Of a stretch of 32,000 nucleotides of DNA, positions 6,870 through 29,163 are shown one piece after another. The notes under the pieces were generated by a model. It did no database searches. It was given only the letters and a program-made list of their open reading frames with translations, and was not told the DNA's origin. This DNA comes from Paramicrosporidium saccamoebae KSL3. Lineage: Eukaryota > Fungi > Cryptomycota. How positions within the stretch are numbered: position 1 is the first letter of the stretch; every line of letters begins with the position of its first letter. The stretch covers positions 148,915-180,914 of the forward strand of contig MTSL01000065.1 of the NCBI GenBank assembly GCA_002794465.1, given 5' to 3'. Both the position numbers and the translations under genes were made by a program.

Positions 6870-7798
6870 ATGGCTATAGCAAAGTATAGCGACTTTGCGC
6901 GCACCACCACCGACTTTTTCACCAAAGACTTTCCCTCTGGCGTAGTCAAGGTTGAGGCCCGCACTCAGTCCCGCAGTCTGTTGGCATCGCGCAGCAGTGG
7001 AAAATGGGAAACCTTTTCGGATGAATTCAAGGTGACTGCCTCGCGCGACCTGGCCACCGGCGCCATTGCTGCGGACGTAAAGAACACCACTCTCTTCCCC
7101 ATTGCAGGAACTAAGACGGGTAGTTTTTCAAGAGAGACTGATGGCGTTTAGAGGCAAAGAGCATTACCACCCTGACTTCTAGCAACCTGCTGACTCAGCA
7201 GTTCATCGTCACTAATGCCGTGTTGGATGGATTGAAGCTCGACGTGACGGGTACCCTGCAGCCGAACGGAACCAACAGCACCAAGGCCAACGTGGAGTTG
7301 AATCAGGGCTGTTTCTTGACTTCCACCTCAATTGACGTTTTCCGCGGCCCCGTTCTGACCACAGACCTGGCCACTCGCTTCCGCTTCCTCCAACTGGGCG
7401 GAGAGGTAGGCTATGATGTTTCCAAGGGCACCCTCGACAGATACTCCGTCTCGCTTTCCATTGACCGTCCGCGTGAAAAGATGGTGTTGCAGGCTTTGAC
7501 CGGCTTCAAGACGTTCACTGCCTCATACTTCCAAAAGTTCAACGACCAGCTGGAGGTGGCCTACCGTTCCTCATGGAACGCCAAGGTGCCAAGTCTGACA
7601 ATGGAAGTTGGTGCTAAATGGAATCTGATTGGCGGTGGATTCATCAAGGCCAAGCTGGACAATGTCGGTCGTCTTGGACTGGCGTTGGCGTCGGATCTGC
7701 GTCCAGGTGTCCAGATGACCCTCGGTGCCACTGTCGACACCCAGAAGCTGAACGATAATGCGCACAAGCTGGGCCTGGAGCTCGTCTACTCTGCCTAA
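6870..7798 (+). CDS. POR1: Mitochondrial outer membrane porin VDAC; intron 7120-7151
   Basis: N-terminal KYSDFARTTTDFFTKDF helix, alternating beta-strand pattern, C-terminal KAKLDN...LRPGVQMTLGATVD...HKLGLEL. Confidence 0.93.
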
Positions 7799-8489: not shown

Positions 8490-9602
8490 CTAGCGATTGA
8501 GAGCAACCCGTTGAGCATTGAGTCTGGCGACGGCCATGTTCCGGTCAACAAAGGTGCCGATCAGCTGCGCCAGCAGATTTGGCTGGTCTTCCTGGATTGC
8601 ATGGCCCGTGTTTCGAATAATGCTATTCTGAAACTTGCCTTGCATGGAGGCAATCATTAGAGTACGATCCAGATATTCTCGTTCAGCCAGCACGAGTACT
8701 CGCGGGATTGCACAGTCTACAAACGCTTGAGAGAGCCCGCGGAACCAGTCTTCCCAAAAAGGCCGACATTGTAGAAGATTGACCTTCCATTGAAAAATCC
8801 CCTCCGTTCGGACGAGCTGATCGGGGATTGAGATGGATGCCGATTCCGTGTTTCGACACGTACCAGACATGAGAGCCCAGTAAATTGCATCTTCCAACGT
8901 GGAGAATGACACTGGCCTTCGTGCCAACGTTGCCGGCATGGAGCGCAGAGCCAGAAGAGCAGCCTCCTCCACAATATCAATGACTATCACCCCCGCCACA
9001 TCTGCCAGCAGATTCTGTGTGGCAATCCGACAAACGACTGCTCCGCCGAGACTATGACCTGCCAAGAAGACGTAATGCGGTGCACTGAAGCTCCGACAGA
9101 CATTCTCCACCACGGTAACATAATCGGACAGCAAACAATCCAAGGAGAGGTCGCATTCGTCCCCGGAGGAGGATCCGTGTGCCCGTGCATCAATGCTAAC
9201 GACAGCAATGTGGGGATATTCGAGACACAGCTCCCTCGTCAGTGTGGCAAAGGAGAGTGCAGAGTATCCTGCGCCATGGTGGGTGAATAGGACAGCCTGC
9301 TCCTCGTCTGGCTGTAGACCTCGGGTGTATAATGAAAACTCCTACATTGAGTCAGCGGCCTTGTTCAATGTACTCCCCGCTCCGTGGTCTCGATATGATG
9401 CTCATCAAAATAGTCCTGCCATTTCCCTCTACTCGTTACAATTTCATTAGCCAGTTTACGGGGTGACTGTGGTGGATAATGACTCCTGTTGGTGTTCGTT
9501 CTCTGTCTGGTTTTCATGTTCCGGCTGGCGCTCATATTCCGGTTGACGCTCATAGTCCGGCTGGTGCTCATATTCCGGTTGGTACTCGTATTCGTCGACC
9601 AT
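8490..9602 (-). CDS. PPE1: PP2A methylesterase PME-1 with N-terminal acidic repeat; introns 9429-9459 and 9342-9373
   Basis: Spliced MVDEYEYQPEY...TPGKWQDYFDE...HHGAGYSALSFA...DARAHG; GHSLGG nucleophile, VIDIVE, GHAIQED. Confidence 0.9.
9492..9581 (-). repeat. 18-bp coding tandem repeat, 5 units (QPEYEH/QPDYER/QPEYER/QPEHEN/QTENEH), in PPE1 exon 1
   Basis: CAA CCG GAA TAT GAG CAC / CAG CCG GAC TAT GAG CGT / CAA CCG GAA TAT GAG CGC; early units vary mostly at third codon positions in this frame. Confidence 0.85.
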
Positions 9603-10613: not shown

Positions 10614-11523
10614 TCACCGCTGCTTCTGTGTCTGCGTCTCCCTCAACAGGAACGAGATCCACACATCCGAAAGCCCCTGCTTTATGGCAGGCTGGATTTG
10701 TTCCCCTCTCACGCCCACTCGCTGCAGCTCTTCCGCTGTCATGCCGAGGGAACGCCCGAGGATCATCCAGACTTCGGTGTGAGGGATCTTTGGTGATGGG
10801 CCGAGGAGTGAAAGGAGCAATGATCGGATGTAACCCCTATGGTGTCAGAATATGGAAATACGTACTTGTCAATAGAACCATCCCGTCCCTCCTTGTTCTC
10901 GCCCTTGATCAGAGCGGATATTTCACCACGCAGCATATTCACTATGATAAATTTAGTCTACAGCTTTAGTGTACCTTCTTCATTAAGCTGATCAATCAGA
11001 CAGTTGCGGGAATTCAGATCCTTGCTCAGCTTGGCAACAATTTTACTTTCTTCGGGGCTAGCATCACAGACAGTCTTTTCCGCCAGTCGCTTTTCTAAAT
11101 CCAAAACCTTTTTCCGCGCCTCTAAGAGTCCAACTGAAACTTCCTCTTGCACATCTACGTCGTTATAGTCTGTATTCAGTGTTTACTTGATTGCAGCATG
11201 ACGAGGGCGGTCTGTAGATTGTTGTTCTTCTCAGTGAGCTCCTCGATACTTCCCTCCTGTCTCATGATAATCTCCTTTAATTTTTCATTCTCAGCATGAA
11301 GCTGCTCCACTATTAGCGCAAAGTCCGGCTCCTCCTCACGCTGCAGTTCGCGAATAATCTTGTCTCGCTCTGCGAGATTGGCCTCAAGCTCTTCGATGTT
11401 CTGCCGAGTCTTGACAGAATCTTCATTAATTTCAGCATCAAGTTGGAGCAGGAACGACTTTAGTCTCTCAACCTCATCGCGGTACTTGCTGAAATCCTCT
11501 GCGGGTGGAGCCGCCGTTGACAT
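10614..11523 (-). CDS. Short coiled-coil golgin with GRAB domain and GA1 motif (Rud3/GMAP-210-like); 3 short introns
   Basis: Heptad-rich exons, then IDKGYIRSLLLSLL...EVWMILGRSLGMTAEELQRVGV and LSDVWISFLLRET, resembling GRAB and GA1. Confidence 0.7.
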
Positions 11524-11547: not shown

Positions 11548-11619
11548 TGCGTTGGCCGGGAATCGAACCCGGATCCCATGCTTGGAAGGCATGGATGCTA
11601 ACCATTATACCACCAACGC
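11548..11619 (-). tRNA. tRNA-Gly(TCC)
   Basis: GCGTTGG/CCAACGC acceptor stem, CATGC-CTTCCAA-GCATG anticodon arm, CCGGG-TTCGATT-CCCGG T arm, downstream T-run. Confidence 0.97.
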
Positions 11620-14857: not shown

Positions 14858-17800
14858 ATGATGGCGTCTCCTGACTTGTCCTCTCTCTATTATCTGCTGA
14901 CCAGCTCACTCAGCCAGCAGGAGCAGCTTCGTAAGGAAGCCGAGACGCAACTTGAACAGGTAGACGAGTGTGGCGACTAATATGGGTGTAGGCATCGACA
15001 GCGGCTGGGTTCAGTGTGGCGCTACTTCAGGTGGCAGCGGGTCAGAGCGGAGATGCGTCGGCCCGTCAGGCGGCAGCAGTCTATTTCAAGAATCTGGTGA
15101 ACAAGCGCTATGATCCGTATGAGGAAGGCAAAGTCCCAGCGCTGAGTGACGAGGATAAGATCCAAATTAGGACGCTTGTGGTGAGAGCGGTGATGGAGTG
15201 TTCCCCCGTAGTCCGGCCGCAGCTGATCGCGGCAACGCATAAAATAATCCGTGCAGATTTCCCAAAGCGATGGCCCAACTTGGTGGAGGAGCTGTATCCT
15301 CTGATCACCTGTGGTGAAGCAGAGCGAGTTATTTCAGCGTTGGCAATTTTCCACGAGGTAGTCTCCTGGCACGGCGGAACAGCCGTGGATGACACCCGCG
15401 AGCTGATCCACGGAAGAATGTTCCCAGTGCTTCTGTCCATTCTGCAGACCCAAATGGAGATGGCAGCCAAGCTCGACAAGGAGGCAGTTATTATTGTCAA
15501 ATCCATTTTAAAGAGCTTCCACGCCGCCATCCAATACCGCTTCAGCACGCATTTGCTGTTAGGTGATGCTTTTAGCAATTGGTGCACAGCCGTGACGCAC
15601 GTCATCCAACTCGCCCCACCGGCCGAGATTTTGGCACTGAGCGGCGAGGAGACGGAGGCGCATATTTACTGGAAAATGAAGAAATGGGCGGTGCGGATCC
15701 ACAACAAAATCTTTCAGCGTTATGGGTGCGCCAAATTGGACTCGTTTAACAATCCCGACAATATGCCGTTTGCTAAATTCTATATGGAGCAGGTGGCACT
15801 TCCCGTCCTTGGCGTCTATTTGGGTCAGATTGAGCTGTCTCTGCAAGGAAAGAATCCCTTCAGTGAACGTATCTTCAGTCTGCTGACCGAGTTTTTGGAA
15901 AGTTGTATCCGTCACAAAAAGACATGGGAGGTGGTGCAGAAACACGCCATGGACTTGGTGACGCATTTCATGTTCCCACGCATCTGCTTCACTGAGGAGG
16001 ACCAAGAGATGTGGGATGCGGATGGAGAGGAGTATGTACGCACCAAACTCGATCCATTTGAAGAGATTTATTCGGCGCAGTCAGCCAGTATCAACTTTAT
16101 CCTCGATCTGATCAAATGCCGCAAGAAGACAATGTTTGTTCCAGTCTTGCAATTTGTGAATCAGACCATGTCGGCCTCCACATCGGATGTTGCCTCCCAA
16201 CGGCGTAAGGACGGTGCCCTCTTCATTATGGGATCTATTGCGACAGTGCTGATGGCGTCTGACTTTAAGAGCCAAATTGAGCCGGTGGTGGCTTCGTTTG
16301 TGATTCCCGAGCTGGCCAGTCCGCAGGGTTTCCTGCGCATGCGAGCCTGCTGGACGTTGGAGCAGTATGACGAGATGGAGTACAGTCAGACTGTGTGTAT
16401 GAGTGCCCTTCAGGGGGTCCTTACCTGTCTGACTGACAAGGAACTGCCCGTAAAGGTGGCAGCTACGGGTGCTCTTGGAGCGCTGCTGGATAATGACACG
16501 ACGCAAAAGGCATTGCCTCCGTATTTGGGTAAAATCATGGAATCGATCCTGGCGTTGGCGAATGAGATCCAACTAGACTCATTGTCGTTTGTGCTAGAAC
16601 GTCTGGTGCAAATGTTTGCCGACGAGTTGGCGCCATACTCTGTGCAGCTGTGCGTGCAACTGCGCGACACGGTGGCGCGTCATTTGGAGGGCTACCAGAA
16701 CGTGCTGGACGTGGACGCAGCTGACGACAACTTTGGACAGAATGCGGACAAAATGATGGCAGTGGTGGGAATGTTCAAAGCCATTGAGACACTGATTGAT
16801 TCGATGGGAAAGACCCCCGAGTTGGTCACTAAGATGGAGGAAATTGTGTTGCCGCTATTAGCCATGGTCTTGGATCGTCGCATCATTGACGTGTATGAGG
16901 AGACCTTTGAGTTGATTGACTCGATTACCTTTTCACGGAAACAGATTAGCCCGACATTGTGGACTCTGTTCCCCTATATCCATCGCGCCTTCCAAGACTG
17001 TGGAGCTGACTATATCCAGGACATGCAAACGACTCTTGATAACATCATCTCCTACGGCAGTGCCGCCTTGATGGCTAACCCTGAATATATGCGCATGCTC
17101 ATGGACATTGTACGCACCACTATGACATCCGACGAGTTTAGCGAATACGATCGCGTCTACGGCTGTCGATTGATGGAATCGCTAATGCTGAACTGTCGCG
17201 GCCACGTGGATGCCGTCCTAGGCGAGTTTATTGCGGCAGTGGGCCCCACAATCTCTGATCCTGAAGAATGCTCGCAATCGGTGGTAGTGCATCATCTGGA
17301 AGTGATCATTAATGCATTGTATTACAATGCTGGATTAGCATTGCAGCACTTGGAGCAACTGCAATTGACAGCACCCTTCTTCACCTTGTGGTTTAGCAAG
17401 GCGGAGCGCTTCTCCCGAGTCCACGACAAACGTCTTATTATTGTGGCATTGTCAACGCTCATGACGCTGCCTTTGGCGCATTTGCCGCCGTTCCTGCAGC
17501 AAAACTGGCGTTTCGTACTGCCCGTCTATCTGACTGCCATCCAAACTCTTCCCAAGGCGCTGGAGGAGCGACGCAAGCTGGAAGAGGAGGATCAATCGGC
17601 TGATGATTCGGAATATGACGAACTCAGTGACGGTGACTATGACGAGATCAACGACGACGGACCCGGAGAGGCGGAAGAGGAGTTTGTGCCAGCAACCCGC
17701 AAGGTAGACGAGTACAATTACAATGACTACAGCGACGACGAGTCCTATGAAGATGATCTGGAGGAGGAAGTGTTCTTTGAGACACCGTTGGATACGGTTG

Positions 17801-19644: not shown

Positions 19645-22080
19645 TTATTGGACGCAGAGCGCAGCAGGGTATTCTTCAGAAATAATCAGGGTCACAAGGG
19701 CGCTCCACCCAGTAAATGGATGAACGCCCTTGCCCTGGCCGTCCACATCGGCATACCGCTCCCAGATAAAGCCAGATTGCATATATTGCTATCGTGAGCC
19801 ACACATCACCATCATAATACCTTTGTCATATTTGAGATAATGTTGGAGCGCAGTCGAGTGTAGATAGATGTGGCACGTTCGTGGTGGGGACAATTCTTCC
19901 CCATGTAGTTGAGCTTGAGACTTGCCAGTAGCAAATAGTTAATGTTTATCCAGATCGGTCCTGTCCAGCGCTGATCGCCCTTCATATAGAAAGAGTCTGA
20001 GACGGACAGCGAGCGGATCCCGTAGCTACACTTTCCAGATAGTCAAAGTTAACTACCTGCTCCACAGCCGTGTCTCGTCCTCGATAATTTCAAAGAGGCT
20101 GTTAAGACGGACAGAGTCCGGTGGCACCAGTCCCAAGATGAGAGGAAATATGGCCACATATCCAATATGCTCCACAAACATAAAGTTGTCTACAATGCAT
20201 GACATATCCCTCTAGGCCTACCTTCTTGATCAATGGTGCGATCCTGATAACAGCCAGCTCTTTCATTCCAATGGACGTTTTCAATGGCCCTCATTGCATC
20301 CTCTTCAATCTGTGCCAATGGAGCACCTGCGAGCCGAGTCCATGAAACATCTCCTGCCGTCCCTGTAATCTCTCGGAGACGTCTCAGTGTACGAGCAGCA
20401 AATGCCATCCAAGCAGCCAAATCCACATGAAGTTCGTACTCATTCGGGGTCGTTCCACGCGGATAATCCTCCAACCCCGAGGTCAGCGTGTAATGTTTGC
20501 TCCTACCCCTCCAGCGGTACAGACCTGCGGAAGATTGTGCTTCCAAGGCAGGATGCAGATTTCCATGCTGGGTCCGTGTAAACCAGCGCAAATTTCGTTC
20601 AAAGTGTGGCAGTAAGAGGGTGATCGAGTCGCTTGTTTCTGGATCCTTGTTGAATGCCAAGACCAACTCATAAAGTGGCAGAAGAAGGCTCGGAGGATTG
20701 CCAAATTTCGGGTTCTGGGGCCAGTGATCAATGGGTACTTGGCCGCGCGCTTCTTCTCCAGCAATCTGCTCTCGCGCCATCCATCCATTTTGATCAATCC
20801 TTTCGGCCCAATTAGCAATAATGCGCAGAGAAATGTGTGGATTCCATTTTTGAATCACAAGGCTGTCGAATCCAGAATCCCACAGGAATCCACAAGGGGA
20901 AGTAGCCCTTGATGGAGTATCCGTCAATAGTTCAAAGGGCTCCGTCTCTTTCAGCCTTCGAATCCCATCGACCCATTCATACACAACTCCTCGGCCATAG
21001 GAATAACCAATTCCCCCTAAAAGATTGCTCAATGCGACCTTTGACATGTTCTTGGTATCCAAATCAATTTGCGGGACTGACAAGAATTCATCAAACCGGG
21101 ATTCAAAGTCATTTAACAATGGCGACCGATTCCCCAGAGTTCTGAAATTTTCTAACCGCCCATCATATTCTATTTCCACTTTAAAAGGGCTATCAAAGAC
21201 AAGTTGGGTTAAAAGCGCATTTGGGGCTGTCACCGTGCTCGGATTACATAACAAAAAGAGATTGGCAGGCGACAGATCCTTTTCGTGCTCAACCCGAGTG
21301 GCAGCGCATTGACCAAGCTCTGCACTTATAATTTCCTTCATTCTCCATTGGTTTGATGGTTCTACTATCATGGAGCTCTGTCGCATTGTCCTTGCATCAG
21401 GATAGCTAATCCTGAGAGTAAATTCGCCCGTATCGCTGGTCCAGCCGCGGAGAAGGGTCTCATGATTGTTATTACTCTTCGTGTTCATGGCATATTCTGC
21501 ACCATTGTAGGCAGCATAGTGCATCCACGACACTTGCATGGAATTGTTCCTCTGCAAAGGTTCGCCAGTCACACTTACCCTCCAGGAATGCGCTATTAAT
21601 GAGACAGACTATAGCGGATACCAGAAGTCTTGCGGTATATGATGGAAAGTGACAGATTGTTGTCAAAATCTTCCACAATCTCCCTCCCATACCGATCACC
21701 ATCATGCTCAACCCACCTCCATCTCGTTGCATCATGCACGCTACACTCGTGTCTAATCCCTACCTGTCACCCACCACCTCTCTTTTACGTTTGCAACTGG
21801 CAAAGTCTTGCGTCCCGAACCACATAATCCCCGTCAGCAACGAATTTGGGCGCGCCATCCTCATTCCAAAGTACAAATGGCTACGATAGGTGCCCCAGAG
21901 ATACTGTTCGTCCCCCCGTATCTTCTTCAAGAGTCCACTTAGACTTGACATTGATGTGGATCGGAGATGGAGCCAACTCACCACAAAGAACACTGCCACA
22001 ATCCCAACTACCATCAAGTACTTTTCAGGTGTGCGACAATGAGTAGCATTCCCCAAAGTCTTTTGTTCTTTCTTGGCCAT
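19645..22080 (-). CDS. CWH41: ER glucosidase I (GH63, Cwh41/MOGS) homologue with altered active-site motifs; 5 short introns
   Basis: Type II TM anchor, LWGTYRSHLYFGMR, GWMAREQI, NPPSL, HIGYVAIFP, YGIRSLS, GFIWERY, HPFTGWSALV. Confidence 0.92.
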
Positions 22081-24535: not shown

Positions 24536-25524
24536 TTATGGAATCTCATCCAGGGTGAATTTGCCAATCTCCCCTGATCGAAACGTCTTCATTAGCCAAC
24601 TAACGGTATTTCGGACATTAGGGGTGCTATTGTTGTTGACATTACCCAGTACGCGAGACAAGTGCTCTAAGAAGAGCACCGTGTCTGTGGGTGGGGCTGT
24701 CAATTGAAACTTGTCGAGATATGTTTTGTAGTCTTGCGATTTGAGATAGCTCAGGACATAGTCGGCGAGAAGATGATCACCGATGACCGAGTCCATTATG
24801 GCACCTACATAATGAAAATGCACACTCAATTGAGTTACCAGTGACAGCCAACTTCATTCCTTGCTCTGCACTGGTAATTTTTGGCATCAGAATGCCTGGC
24901 GAGTCATACAAAAATGTCAGCGGTTCATCCAGGATACGCACCACTCCAGATACAGCTCTTGTGATGCCAGGCCGATCCCCAACACACACAGCCTTGGTGC
25001 TCTTATTGATTCCGAGACTGCGAAGTCGGTTGATGACGGTGGACTTGCCAACATTCGGCATGCCCACCACCATGAGACGAGTGCGCTCCCGGTTAGGGAG
25101 TTTTCGGACCATGTAGGCGACCTTATGGAGGAGTTCTCTATAAGACTTTTGTCCTTGCAAAGTAAGATTTTAAATGGACTTTACCTTGTGAAGTAAGCAT
25201 CATACATCGGTCCGGCCACATCCGCTCTCCATATTCCTCCAGCCTCTAAACATTAAAATGTCGCTGCCGGTACGCGGTTGGCTCGCGGATCGGAAATATC
25301 ACATTTGTTGTATATGACTATGCGCTCGTGGCCTTGGAGGAGGCTATCGAGAGCTGGGCTACAGGAACTCAGCGGGACGTAACTAGAACATTAACACGGA
25401 GAATGGCGTGTATCCTTGCGTCGCGAACATCAAGGACGACGTCGCAGCGTTTCAGCAGCCGTTGCATATGCGTGAGGCCAGCTTTCATATGACTTGGGAA
25501 CCAGTGTAAACTGATTTTACTCAT
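24536..25524 (-). CDS. MTG1: Mitochondrial ribosome assembly GTPase Mtg1 (RbgA family); 4 introns, first AT-AC (25379-25413)
   Basis: HWFPSHMK, DVVLDVRDAR|VPLSS, YNKCD, VGMPNVGKST, PGITR, DSPGI, FRSGEIGKFTLD. Confidence 0.93.
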
Positions 25525-25763
25525 GTCATACAAAAATGTCATTTTTGGATACCGTGGCGTCCCTAGAATGTATCAATAGAAACTACAAGCTCGCGCCCTT
25601 GAAATCTGTTCGTGTCATTTTAGCATCTGTAAATTGCCAAATTCGTGACATATCCTTAATGATGCATCTGAAATTTGTGTATTGGCGGTTGTCGTGCATC
25701 CCTAGGACCAGCCGAGAACGGTTTGAGCAGAGTATATATTTATTTGCGCAAACAACAGAACAT

Positions 25764-26142
25764 TTAGAGCTCAACAAGTTCACGCAGACGACGGACGCTG
25801 CTACGGACAGTGGCCGCGGCAGTAGTTCTACAGGTCAATAATCCATGGTTTGTCTTACCCCATCTGCCAGGCACCTCCGGCCACAACCTTTCCACAGCCA
25901 CGGCACTCCCAAATACCAACCGACTTGCGCTTCACGCTGTCCTACACTATAAGCGACATTCACCGGTGCATACGCGTCCACAGAAGGAGCAGGTGTACTT
26001 GCTGTGCTGGGTGATTTCGATCTTCTTGATCTGCTTACGCAGAGAGGCACCATAGCGGGTGCCGTACTTGCCGACTACACCAACTTTCTTTGTGTGCTTG
26101 GCCTAGGATGGATGGATGAGAGGGGGAGGGGAGTTGTACCAT
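25764..26142 (-). CDS. RPL43: 60S ribosomal protein eL43 (L37a); introns 26103-26139, 25942-25973, 25828-25858; not recovered by the ORF track
   Basis: M|[43 protein letters not shown]|[28 protein letters not shown]|[20 protein letters not shown]. Confidence 0.96.
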
Positions 26143-26388: not shown

Positions 26389-29163
26389 ATGGGAACGCTT
26401 GGATTGACTTTTAGTCATGGAGGTTCCTTCTATCCCCCACTATCGCCGAACAAGTAATCCCATTCATTAATCTTACATTCTAGAAACCTGCCGCTTCAAA
26501 TCCACTCTTGTCAGCCATTTCCTTGCGACACTTGGCTAACCGGCATCGCATCCGTCTCTGTACACAACCAGTAGTTACTCACCAGTAGGACGACCAGTAT
26601 TTTCTTGTGAGCAGCGCGGCAAGACAGCGGTCTGGACTGTTTGCCTTTTCAAACACTACCCAAAAGGGGGATTCCCTGCGGGTAAGCCATGTTATACTCG
26701 ACTGACCTGACAGGGAGCTAACAGACGCATGTGGAATGTCAGTGTGGCCAAATCTGGCCGTGTTCTCATGGCTCTTGATGGCCAGGCGGTGGCGCTAGGT
26801 TCGCTTAGTACAGCATCAGGCAATCTTGAATTATCTGACACTACGGACGTGGTGCTTTCGGTAAAACCCGTGCGGATTTTTCTCATCATGGTAGAGTGTG
26901 GATGATGGTAGAATAGAGCAGTCGTTTTTTGTGGCTGAAAATGAAGACTACTTTGCTACACGGACGAGTAGGTGCGTCAAGCTCTGGGGACTGAGGTCAG
27001 ATCAAGCCGTCTTGACCCGTGAGATTGCTCTTACTCTCCAAGATGACCAGACCACGGGACACTGCGAGTCAAATATGCACGACCCGAATGTTTTCTTGAC
27101 CAGCATTATACAAGATGGATTTTCTCTGTGGGACGTCCGTGCAGCATCTCAGTTGTGCTACTCGCAAAACATGTCAGTGACCCCGCAAACAAAGTTCAAA
27201 TGGAACCCATTCATTCCGTATTGGATTGCTGCTAGTACGGAAAAAAACGTTCAAATATACGATCTTCGATACACAGGCAACAAGCCAATGTGCATACTGC
27301 CGACTCCTCACGCCAATGACGTATTCGCCTCAGCCTCTGCTAATATGTCAGTTCGCCTGGTCCAACTCAAACTGTGAATTACTGATGGCAGTCACTAGCA
27401 GTCGAGTTGATTCTCTCTGGAATCTAAGGAACCTCAAGCATGAGGCGGCGGCAATCCATCACTCTGACTGTGGCGGTGACATTTCGCACGGTAGCATATC
27501 CCTTCCTTAACTAAGACTGCAGTATTCGCCTCAAAGACGGATCTCAATGTGTTCTATGGGCTCACTCAGCTAGGAAAGCTGGTTCGCATTAATGTTCAAG
27601 ATTATTTATTGGAAGAGTGTGCTCCGAGAGAGTAATAATGTTGGCGATATTGACCTGTGTAGTAACGAGAATATGATCGCGCGAGGCATTGAAACCGCAT
27701 TGTACTGTCGCAATTTCGATGCCGTCTACCACTCTCTTTTGGAATATTCTGATTCTGCAGTGCACTCTTCGTAAACGGCGCGTGATTTTCTTGACATTTA
27801 GATTCAAAGAGCTCCAATTGTTGACCAGTCAAACCTTACCTACTGCACCAATTCCAAAAGAGTCTTGGAAGTATAATGAACTGAGTGCCGACAGTTGTAA
27901 TTTTCAAAAAGATTTGCAAACCTTTTCAAGAAGGTGCCCGCCCGGATTCGATGTGTCTCTGTTCGAGGCCAAGTCGGGGATGGTCAAAGAATCTGTAGAT
28001 TATATTCGTTCCAAAGTGAAAATATTGGAACTCATTCAAAAGGGCGACTATTCCAAATTGTCCACTCAATTAGAAAGCATTTTAGGGACACTTGCAGAGC
28101 ATGCTGATTTCCTGAACACCGAGTCTATTCAGATGCTTGTGAATGTCCTCTTGGAAGAGGATCGACTAGAAGCGTTACAATTTGCTCGACACATTCTCAG
28201 CATGGCAGGACCACGGCTAGACGGCGACTCGTGTGCGTTGCTACACACACTCTTGTTTCCGACAATCTTTGATTCCGAAGCTGCAAAACTTGTAAAACAG
28301 TCTGATCGGTCTTCACCCAACAAGCAGCCCGATCGCGGTACTCCTGGCAAGCTAACATCTTCGCATACTGAACCGTCTGATCGTGCCTCTCCCGGTAAGC
28401 CAATACCTCGGCACTCTGAGCAGCCCTCCACACCGCCTGCACCGACAGCTCAGCCAAACATGGCAAGAACACCTATTAAACCAGCAGTTGGCACTGTTCG
28501 TGCGTCAGAAAAGTGTTTGATGGACCTGAACAGAACAGTTCGATTGACCAAGCATGCAATTAGCATGATTGACTTGGAAATGTAAATCCCTCAAAATGAC
28601 TAATATTTAGTCAACTTGAGGAAGCCGATTCGACTGAATATGCAACAATTCTTGTAAACGAATTGGCTATTGAGAAAAGGACTGTTTCTGCAACGCTGAT
28701 TTGGAAATATTGTGAGCTCTTATTGGAGAGATCACAAATGGACATTTATTTTGCACATCTAGGCCAATTTACAACAGTAGTACGCGTTTGGTTGGCTAAT
28801 CCATAGGAGCCGTTGAATGAATTTGGCGCTGCCCTAATGGACCATCTGGATAAGCAAGTTGTGCCAAAACTAAAATACATCCTCGCCCAAGCCATCGACA
28901 CCCAGAGGCCGTCTTTGGTCCTACGTGCCATTCTTCTCATAGCCATCCTTGTCAAGGGCATCCATCCCTTGCCCAGTGATCTCGAGCCATTCCTCGCAGA
29001 TCGTCTCAAGCGCCTTGGCAGATCCATGGCAAGCGAGGATTACACCCACATGTCAGGATATTCCCAGCTCGTCGACACGGTACGTTCCATCTCCATCCCG
29101 GTGAGTGACAATGTTCTTTGGCGTGAACTCTCGAGATTACAGGCCCGTCTGACCACCAACTGA
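26389..29163 (+). CDS. Multi-exon WD40-repeat protein with long helical C-terminal region, family not assigned; start uncertain
   Basis: WD-like ends VKLWG, FSLWDVR, KWNPFIPYWIA...QIYDLRY, SLWNLR. Exons join in frame through about 10 GT-AG introns of about 30 nt. Confidence 0.7.

Follow-up and report, generated by a model that had tools for sequence, protein, structure and literature searches.

The DNA examined here, referred to as the window, is a 32,000-nt stretch of the Paramicrosporidium saccamoebae KSL3 genome (contig MTSL01000065.1, positions 148,915 to 180,914 of the forward strand). Its minus strand carries MTG1, encoding mitochondrial ribosome-associated GTPase 1 of the RbgA/YlqF family, and the first intron of this gene is a 35-nt segment that begins with AT and ends with AC. 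The corrected gene model is given below in window coordinates; here and throughout, a slash within a sequence marks a splice junction.

24536..25542, minus strand: MTG1 (mitochondrial ribosome-associated GTPase 1, RbgA/YlqF family), ATG to stop, five exons, 292 aa
25414..25542, minus strand: exon 1, M1..R43, last codons GAC GCA AGG (D-A-R)
25379..25413, minus strand: AT-AC intron, 35 nt, phase 0, at the R43/V44 boundary
25274..25378, minus strand: exon 2, VPLSS...YNKCD...ANR, carrying the G4 motif NKCD
25246..25273, minus strand: intron 2, GT-AG, 28 nt
25154..25184, minus strand: intron 3, GT-AG, 31 nt
24805..24838, minus strand: intron 4, GT-AG, 34 nt

The spliced protein shows the motif order of the circularly permuted RbgA/YlqF/MTG1 GTPases, with NKCD (G4) at residue 67 preceding GMPNVGKS (G1) at 129 and DRPG/DSPG (DxxG, G3) at 158/182, and it has both the N-terminal DAR[IV]P and the expected similarity to the family. 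Pfam MMR_HSR1 matches it with E=1.3e-11. Among 668 homologues, the top named ones are MTG1 or YlqF, and the best matches are named Mitochondrial GTPase 1. The GenBank MTG1 of P. saccamoebae (P0001, 230 aa) is a faulty model: the AT-AC intron is read as coding sequence (DARIHAILRVNVL), 62 conserved residues of exons 2-3 are skipped, including the G4 motif NKCD, and splicing around intron 4 is also wrong (…AVTGNSIECAFSLYYKTY…). The annotation was produced by MAKER and Augustus trained on Rhizopus (PMC5701793), a set-up unlikely to model AT-AC or 30-nt introns. Poly(A) RNA-seq data for P. saccamoebae (2x125 bp) are published (PMC5701793).

On the minus strand, positions 25413..25379 read ATACACGCCATTCTCCGTGTTAATGTTCTAGTTAC (35 nt), flanked by GAC GCA AGG and GTC CCG CTG AGT TCC. 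Excising them yields ...VLDVRDAR/VPLSSCSPALD; left unspliced, the frame continues as DARIHAILRVNVLVTSR and then reaches a TGA stop. An earlier note on this DNA had proposed that removal of the AT...AC segment restores D-A-R-V-P-L-S-S and that the unspliced frame stops at TGA. Rereading the sequence and frame, the translation and the invariance of DAR in the family alignment bear out both points. In that alignment, which runs from Bacillus-type RbgA to mammals, D41, A42 and R43 are invariant and are followed by [IV]P without a gap. The same note held that no GT-AG or GC-AG pair nearby restores the frame, and this has to be withdrawn. In-frame, stop-free pairs do exist, among them GT-AG 25397..25354 (44 nt) and GT-AG 25378..25359, and also several of the GC-AG kind whose donors fall at 25471-25424, though each of them removes DAR or [IV]P[LIV][ST]S, or adds unrelated residues.

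The same codon boundary is interrupted by AT...AC inserts of 37, 43, 47 and 48 nt in four uncultured relatives, all from independent assemblies, whose MTG1 is 50-69% identical to that of the window over the C-terminal domain. These contigs bore prokaryote-style open reading frame calls that read through the insert, and their DNA was re-examined. The lengths are mostly not multiples of 3, and all the inserts are interrupted by stops.

L001:841-877, AT-AC intron, 37 nt, ATACATTCC...TTTCTAGATAC
L002:831-873, AT-AC intron, 43 nt, ATACAAACT...TTTATAGATAC
L003:2808-2854 (L004 identical), AT-AC intron, 47 nt, ATACAGTCA...CTCTAGTTGGATAC
L005:434-481, AT-AC intron, 48 nt, ATATAGACG...TTTGTAGCTAC

When the five introns are aligned, A1 T2 A3 Y4 A5, C8, a TAG and a terminal TAC are kept, +6 and +7 vary freely, and the interior cannot be aligned. 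The donor in L005 still begins ATAT. All five carriers use GCA AGG before the intron, so that the -1 G (AGG/) is kept in five of five, and relatives that have no intron use GCC CGG, GCC CGC, GCA CGG or GCA CGC at the DAR codons. In a rough neighbour-joining tree the carriers group together as a single clade (67% bootstrap) that excludes the intron-less relatives. No canonical pair yields DAR[IV]P in any of the five orthologous loci; the AT...AC cut alone yields DAR/[VI]P.

These comparisons bear on whether there is an intron at all. The GenBank model treats the segment as coding, and the AT-AC intron is known here from DNA alone, so that an assembly error, a frameshifted pseudogene or programmed recoding might be considered instead. 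However, five independent assemblies carry an insert at the same boundary, of differing lengths and always AT...AC; the flanking exons are open and conserved, with all G motifs included; and the window is identical to public contig MTSL01000065.1 over 17,465 nt. We find such explanations hardly credible. A U2-type GA-AG intron at 25414..25383, with its 5' end shifted by one base and its 3' end at an internal TAG, would leave an exon ending in AAG/ and an intron ending in the T-N-TAG of local introns. GA-AG introns are known in Blastocystis and Symbiodinium (PMC5608401), and this cut preserves the frame in four loci (the window, L001, L002 and L005). The protein would then read DASYVPLSS. The invariant R of DAR becomes S in the window and in L005 (DASY; two other loci give DARY), a Y is inserted where no family member has a residue, and in L003/L004 the segment is 40 nt and out of frame. 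The base after the TAG also varies among the orthologues (T, A, A, C), which is the behaviour expected within an intron. The GA-AG cut is therefore very improbable. It had been called the sole other in-frame option, which the GT-AG and GC-AG pairs contradict; that it breaks the motif is correct, since the invariant R is lost. We take the 35-nt AT-AC segment to be a real spliceosomal intron, cut at the DAR/VP boundary.

Positional homologues of this intron were sought in animals and other fungi. In pangolin MTG1 (L091:2973-5361) the matching site, between R59 and I60 of HDAR/IPFSG, holds a 2389-nt AT-AC intron of identical phase. It reads CGG/ATATCCTTTGG...TGCCTTAATTGTGCCAC/ATC (longer reading, CGG/ATATCCTTTGGTAG...TTTTTGCCTTAATTGTGCCAC/ATC), with the branch TGCCTTAAT 9 nt from the AC, and its sequence is that of a textbook U12-type AT-AC intron. 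One isoform of Manis pentadactyla (P0057, ...HDARISFGRNPLF) mishandles the MTG1 minor intron. The zoopagomycete Thamnocephalis sphaerospora was examined at the DNA level because its GenBank protein (P0046) lacks VRDARIPFSSINAQ; that model has a GT-AG pair misplaced around a 75-nt U12 intron (L093:539-613, KZ992629.1). This AT-AC intron, too, agrees with the window copy in site and phase. Its sequence is CGG/ATATCCTTG...AATCCTCAGC...GCAC/ATT (longer reading, CGG/ATATCCTTGTGTG...GGAATCCTCAGCTGCAGCGACGCAC/ATT), its donor is canonical U12, and the branch ATCCTCAGC lies 14 nt from the AC. Human and mouse MTG1 are catalogued as minor-intron genes (Olthof et al. 2019, PMC6717393 supplementary files 2 and 3), with donors CGG/ATATCCTTT in human and AGG/ATATCCTTT in mouse and branches TTTACCTTAATT and TATGCCTTAACA; the human intron is chr10:133395778-133396162 (PMC6717393). 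The window intron is therefore positionally orthologous to established U12-type introns, identified by motif scoring in pangolin and Thamnocephalis and by catalogue in human and mouse. U12 ancestry was the shared premise of both readings offered earlier for this intron, and the check then proposed, of the DAR/IP intron in animal and early-fungal MTG1, bears it out. Canonical U12 introns at one site and phase in mammals and Thamnocephalis imply an ancestral minor intron at DAR/IP, and we conclude from this distribution that a U12-type AT-AC intron stood there in the common ancestor of animals and fungi.

The site has met other fates as well. Metagenome contig Ga0302226_10001623 (L035), which is GC-rich and probably fungal, has a 64-nt U2-type GT-AG intron, GTACGT...CAACAG, at its DAR/LP site (L035:2597-2660), also preceded by the codons GCA AGG. 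It was the one copy with GT-AG in a metagenome scan for further MTG1 orthologues, which returned only relatives of at most 38% identity, nearly all without introns. DARIP is uninterrupted in Diversispora and in five rozellid-like relatives (L006, L088, L089, L090, P0005). The absence of the intron from Diversispora and these nearest sampled outgroups, together with the single clade formed by the five carriers in the rough tree, would suit an independent gain, in which the ancestor of the Paramicrosporidium clade acquired an AT-AC intron at an AGG/ proto-splice site that coincides by chance with the position of the U12 intron of animals and zoopagomycetes. Site, phase and AT-AC termini are, however, identical in three far-apart lineages, and surveyed genomes have AT-AC ends in well under 1% of their introns (PMC1557818 Table 1). 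The position of intron 2 is also occupied in the relatives, in pangolin and in Thamnocephalis, so old introns do persist in MTG1. Precise loss, which would explain the outgroups, is the usual fate of minor introns (PMC10639083). We regard an independent gain as quite improbable.

To compare the AT-AC intron with its surroundings, a local reference set of about 30 credible GT-AG introns was assembled from the window by codon-scored chaining of open reading frames and by hand. The set was partly selected for GTA, and A at +3 is therefore not an independent finding; six introns found by hand in MTG1 and RPL37a, without a GTA filter, all begin GTA. Introns of the window (e.g. 7120-7151 plus, 14960-14991 plus, 19378-19350 minus) are extremely short and vary little, at 27-43 nt with a median of 32. 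Beyond GTA, their donors show no preference at +4..+9 (30 introns). Their YTNAY branch stands 6-12 nt upstream of the end, and the end itself is T-N-TAG, with T at -3 in 26/30. Codon-scored chaining found no second AT-AC intron in the window, and a census of all 256 terminal-dinucleotide pairs bridging open frames was too noisy at 50% GC, with not even GT-AG prominent. Candidates beginning with ATATCC at 9219 and 29924 were rejected, as they lie inside continuous exons or on the non-coding strand.

Measured against these introns, the AT-AC copies have lost the U12 motifs. The window donor is ATACACGCC, which does not fit [AG]TATCCTT, and ATATCCTT is absent from the intron, as the earlier note had observed; the relatives have ATACATTCC, ATACAAACT, ATACAGTCA and ATATAGACG. 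At +4..+9 each rozellid AT-AC copy matches the U12 5' consensus (ATATCCTTT) at 1/6 positions, which is also the median of the 30 local GT-AG introns. Best matches to the branch consensus TCCTTAAC are 4-6/9, no different from the 4-5/9 of local GT-AG introns. Pangolin scores 6/6 (5') and 7/9 (branch), and Thamnocephalis 5/6 and 6/9. By these scores the U12 recognition elements have decayed in the Paramicrosporidium clade, evidently so for 5' ATATCCTT and probably so for the branch TCCTTAAC. What the window intron does contain is the layout of a local intron:

25409..25413, minus strand: 5' splice site ATACA (ATAYA across the five orthologues, +8 = C in 5/5)
25390..25394, minus strand: putative branch TTAAT, branch A at 25391, 8 nt upstream of the internal TAG's G and 12 nt from the end of the intron
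25383..25385, minus strand: internal TAG with T at -5, a complete local-type 3' signal that is not the junction used
25379..25381, minus strand: 3' splice site TAC (invariant 5/5), the first AC at least 5 nt past the putative branch A

From A1 to the internal TAG the window intron measures 31 nt, a typical local intron length. All five copies have TTAAT or CTCAT (YTNAY) 7-10 nt before a T-N-TAG, as local introns have YTNAY before theirs, and the branch and 3' region thus agree with a U2-type intron. The TAG lies 4-8 nt before the intron end in all five, where shuffles give 6-15% per intron; because the copies share ancestry these are not five independent cases, although the rest of the interior was not kept. 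The AC used lies 4 nt beyond the TAG (8 nt in L003) and is the first at least 5 nt after the putative branch A; the distance from putative branch to AC is 11-17 nt. TTAAT serves as the branch in two local GT-AG introns, and GTACA donors occur in the window at 26139 and 10974. Two further statements of the earlier note hold on this basis: that ATACAC equals a local GTACAC donor with G1 changed to A (we found GTACAA in RPL37a intron 1 and GTACAC in 10974..10942), and that TTAAT is U2-like. The 5' site matches the local consensus beyond the termini, but only weakly so, because that consensus is so short and the set was partly chosen for GTA. Overall, the sequence of the MTG1 intron fails the features that define U12-type introns and conforms, weakly, to those of U2-dependent AT-AC introns.

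Taken together, our results favour a minor-to-major conversion in which the AT-AC ends were retained and the intron is probably removed by the major spliceosome. The earlier note had left a choice between removal by the major spliceosome of an intron that was once U12-type and still has its AT-AC ends, and removal by a minor spliceosome that is very degenerate; the evidence inclines towards the former, and we keep the latter as a rival. The acting spliceosome, the branch A used and the role of the TAG are inferred from sequence signals. In the sequence of events we propose, the U12 elements would have decayed while the intron shrank to local size and gained a U2-type layout, with YTNAY 7-10 nt before TAG. 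The major spliceosome could then assemble on it as on any tiny local intron, since a donor appears to need little beyond GTA, and the first splicing step would take place at the TTAAT branch. Exon ligation would bypass the TAG and take the first AC downstream, because the first intron base is A and not G. The AT-AC pair would from then on be frozen, since altering one end without the other would prevent splicing. U2-dependent AT-AC introns exist, and a G1A mutation is rescued by a G-to-C change of the last base (PMC1557818, PMC5029451); this compatibility of a first A with a last C is documented by the yeast G1A rescue and by the human SCN4A/SCN5A AT-AC II introns (PMC1557818, PMC5029451). Its application to the MTG1 intron is by analogy and would account for the junction used. 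Minor-to-major conversion is itself a recognised intron fate, and degenerate major donors have been suggested to ease it (Larue and Roy 2023, PMC10639083), of which P. saccamoebae is an extreme case.

Several observations weigh against this conversion. Retention of AT-AC and a branch-to-AC distance of 11-17 nt also suit U12-type splicing. Conservation at +4/+5 (Y, A) and +8 (C) is higher than among the donors of GT-AG intron 2 in the orthologues (GTACCG, GTAATA, GTTTCT, GTAAAC, GTTAGC, GTACAA, GTAAGA), which hints at a recognition requirement beyond U1 or U6 pairing. The local U2 donor consensus is so low in information that matching it is weak evidence and proves little, the more so with a 30-intron set partly selected for GTA. 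Among 5.8 billion sequences in a protein database, only the mis-modelled GenBank entry matches the spliced MTG1 model at >90%. An Rfam scan of the 32-kb window found no minor small nuclear RNA (snRNA) and tRNA-Gly alone, which is uninformative for a 7-Mb genome. We found no report in the literature on minor splicing in Paramicrosporidium or Rozella.

The rival to which these points lead is that a divergent or hybrid minor spliceosome still removes the intron, recognizing an ATAYANNC 5' end and a TTAAT/CTCAT branch 11-17 nt from TAC. In that case no known minor introns would be shorter or more degenerate than the MTG1 copies. Such a reading fits the positional homology to canonical U12 introns, the AT-AC ends kept in five deeply diverged taxa, a branch-to-3'-end distance within the U12 range, a 5' end conserved at five to six positions, more than in neighbouring GT-AG introns, and the ATAT with which L005 still begins. 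Minor introns occur in several early-diverging fungal groups, and the AT-AC-rich minor introns of Blastocystis can measure about 39 nt (PMC10639083). However, the TCC of ATATCC and the TCCTT branch core are found in no copy, and the U12 scores equal those of local major introns. The +6 and +7 positions, which pair with U11 and U6atac in known minor introns, are free to vary among the orthologues. Each copy also keeps a full U2-type branch and a TAG, neither needed for U12 splicing, and the lack of a minor snRNA in the window counts weakly on the same side. We therefore hold the action of a minor spliceosome on this intron to be possible but doubtful. A broader version, somewhat less likely still, is that a functioning minor spliceosome, radically remodelled or hybrid, survives in the Paramicrosporidium clade (which is sister to or near Microsporidia) and acts on 35-48-nt introns, a class of which the MTG1 intron would be the first sighting. 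Its 5'-site and branch recognition would have drifted from ATATCCTT and TCCTTAAC, which are otherwise near-universal in minor introns.

Among known systems, the closest by descent is the U12 intron of vertebrate and Thamnocephalis MTG1, which shares with the window copy the gene, the DAR/I or V-P boundary, phase 0, the AT-AC termini and the exon -1 G. Those introns have ATATCCTT, a branch of the CCTTAAT, CCTTAAC or TCCTCAG type at 9-15 nt from the AC, and lengths of 75 to 2389 nt. The window copy, unlike them, starts ATACACGC, has no TCCTT, is 35 nt long and contains the internal U2-type branch and TAG. The U2-dependent AT-AC II introns of human SCN4A and SCN5A (Sheth et al. 2006, PMC1557818) likewise combine AT-AC ends with what are otherwise the host's major-intron signals, and the compatibility of a first A with a last C would account for the use of AC in both cases. 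Metazoan AT-AC II introns have a strong /ATAAGT donor pairing with U1, whereas the window donor ATACA has no such complementarity, and the major donors of this genome are only GTA. The MTG1 intron differs further in being 35 nt long and in having a U12 descent documented by orthology.

Recorded minor-to-major conversions (PMC10639083) resemble it in that an ancestral minor intron has lost its minor motifs and come to look like a major one, and L035 illustrates the usual GT-AG end point. The converted introns known to us from this literature end GT-AG, but Paramicrosporidium MTG1 kept AT-AC across the whole clade; we found no documented conversion that keeps AT-AC, though the literature was not searched systematically. 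The minor introns of Blastocystis (Gentekaki et al. 2017, PMC5608401; PMC10639083) offer a parallel in size, being very short AT-AC introns (median 39 nt) in a genome of ~30-nt introns. There, however, the introns are classed as U12-type and all four minor snRNAs and seven specific proteins were found, whereas the MTG1 intron has no U12 motifs. A fungus without a minor spliceosome can also ligate AT-AC, as yeast shows both with an engineered G1A intron with a last-base C (Parker and Siliciano 1993, cited in PMC5029451) and with an endogenous RPL30 junction. The RPL30 event concerns 1-2% of transcripts and is dispensable for the protein, whereas in P. saccamoebae AT-AC would be the only route to functional MTG1.

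Minor introns go back about 1.5 billion years and have repeatedly been lost, and the fate of single ones as their recognition decays is usually inferred statistically. At DAR/IP, one site can be followed across lineages as a U12 AT-AC intron (mammals, the zoopagomycete), as a GT-AG intron (L035), as a precise loss and, in the Paramicrosporidium clade, as a stripped AT-AC intron. The last of these, with its U12 signals gone and apparently rebuilt as a local intron of the 30-nt class, may serve as a record of what becomes of a minor intron in a shrinking genome. If the major spliceosome acts on it, it would be a natural, essential and long-lived case of a first A and last C overriding the first AG, and conversion need not proceed via GT-AG. 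If the minor spliceosome acts, the rules of minor-intron recognition would be looser than thought. On the practical side, AT-AC introns break gene models, as the GenBank MTG1 of both P. saccamoebae and Thamnocephalis is wrong at DAR/IP.

Other features of the window were noted in passing. Upstream of MTG1 lies RPL37a (eL43) at 25764-26142 (minus), for which the new model gives 92 aa compared with 79 aa annotated. Three tiny introns (37, 32 and 31 nt) interrupt it, and the first of them follows the ATG immediately (ATG/GTACAA...). RPL37a is also upstream of MTG1 in L088 and L089, so the synteny is conserved. On the plus strand, the annotated genes at ~26728-27376 and ~27718-28584, plus the gap between them, join into one frame at 26895-28581 by way of GT-AG introns 27321-27351, 27491-27522, 27632-27662 and 27771-27801. 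This seems to be one gene split by the public annotation, and its product reads as WD-repeat-like. Its intron 27491-27522 (plus), GTAGCATATCCCTTCCTTAACTAAGACTGCAG, includes two hallmark U12 strings, ATATCC(C)TT and, 12 nt ahead of the AG, an exact TTCCTTAAC. It is probably not a true U12 intron: the donor reads GTAGCA, the branch (CTAAG) stands 8 nt ahead of the AG, a distance usual for local introns, and with AT-AC ends the frame would be lost. We treat the U12 strings as coincidence, though they could be a relic. A second GT-AG intron, 21593-21621 (minus), GTATCCGCTATAGTCTGTCTCATTAATAG, begins GTATCC, the core of a U12 GT-AG donor. Its sole TTAAT, only 3 nt away from the end, is too near it to be a U12 branch, and the local U2 distance is occupied by a CTCAT; the GTATCC start is probably due to chance. 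The tRNA-Gly (TCC) at 11548-11619 (minus) is the sole Rfam or ARAGORN match in the window.

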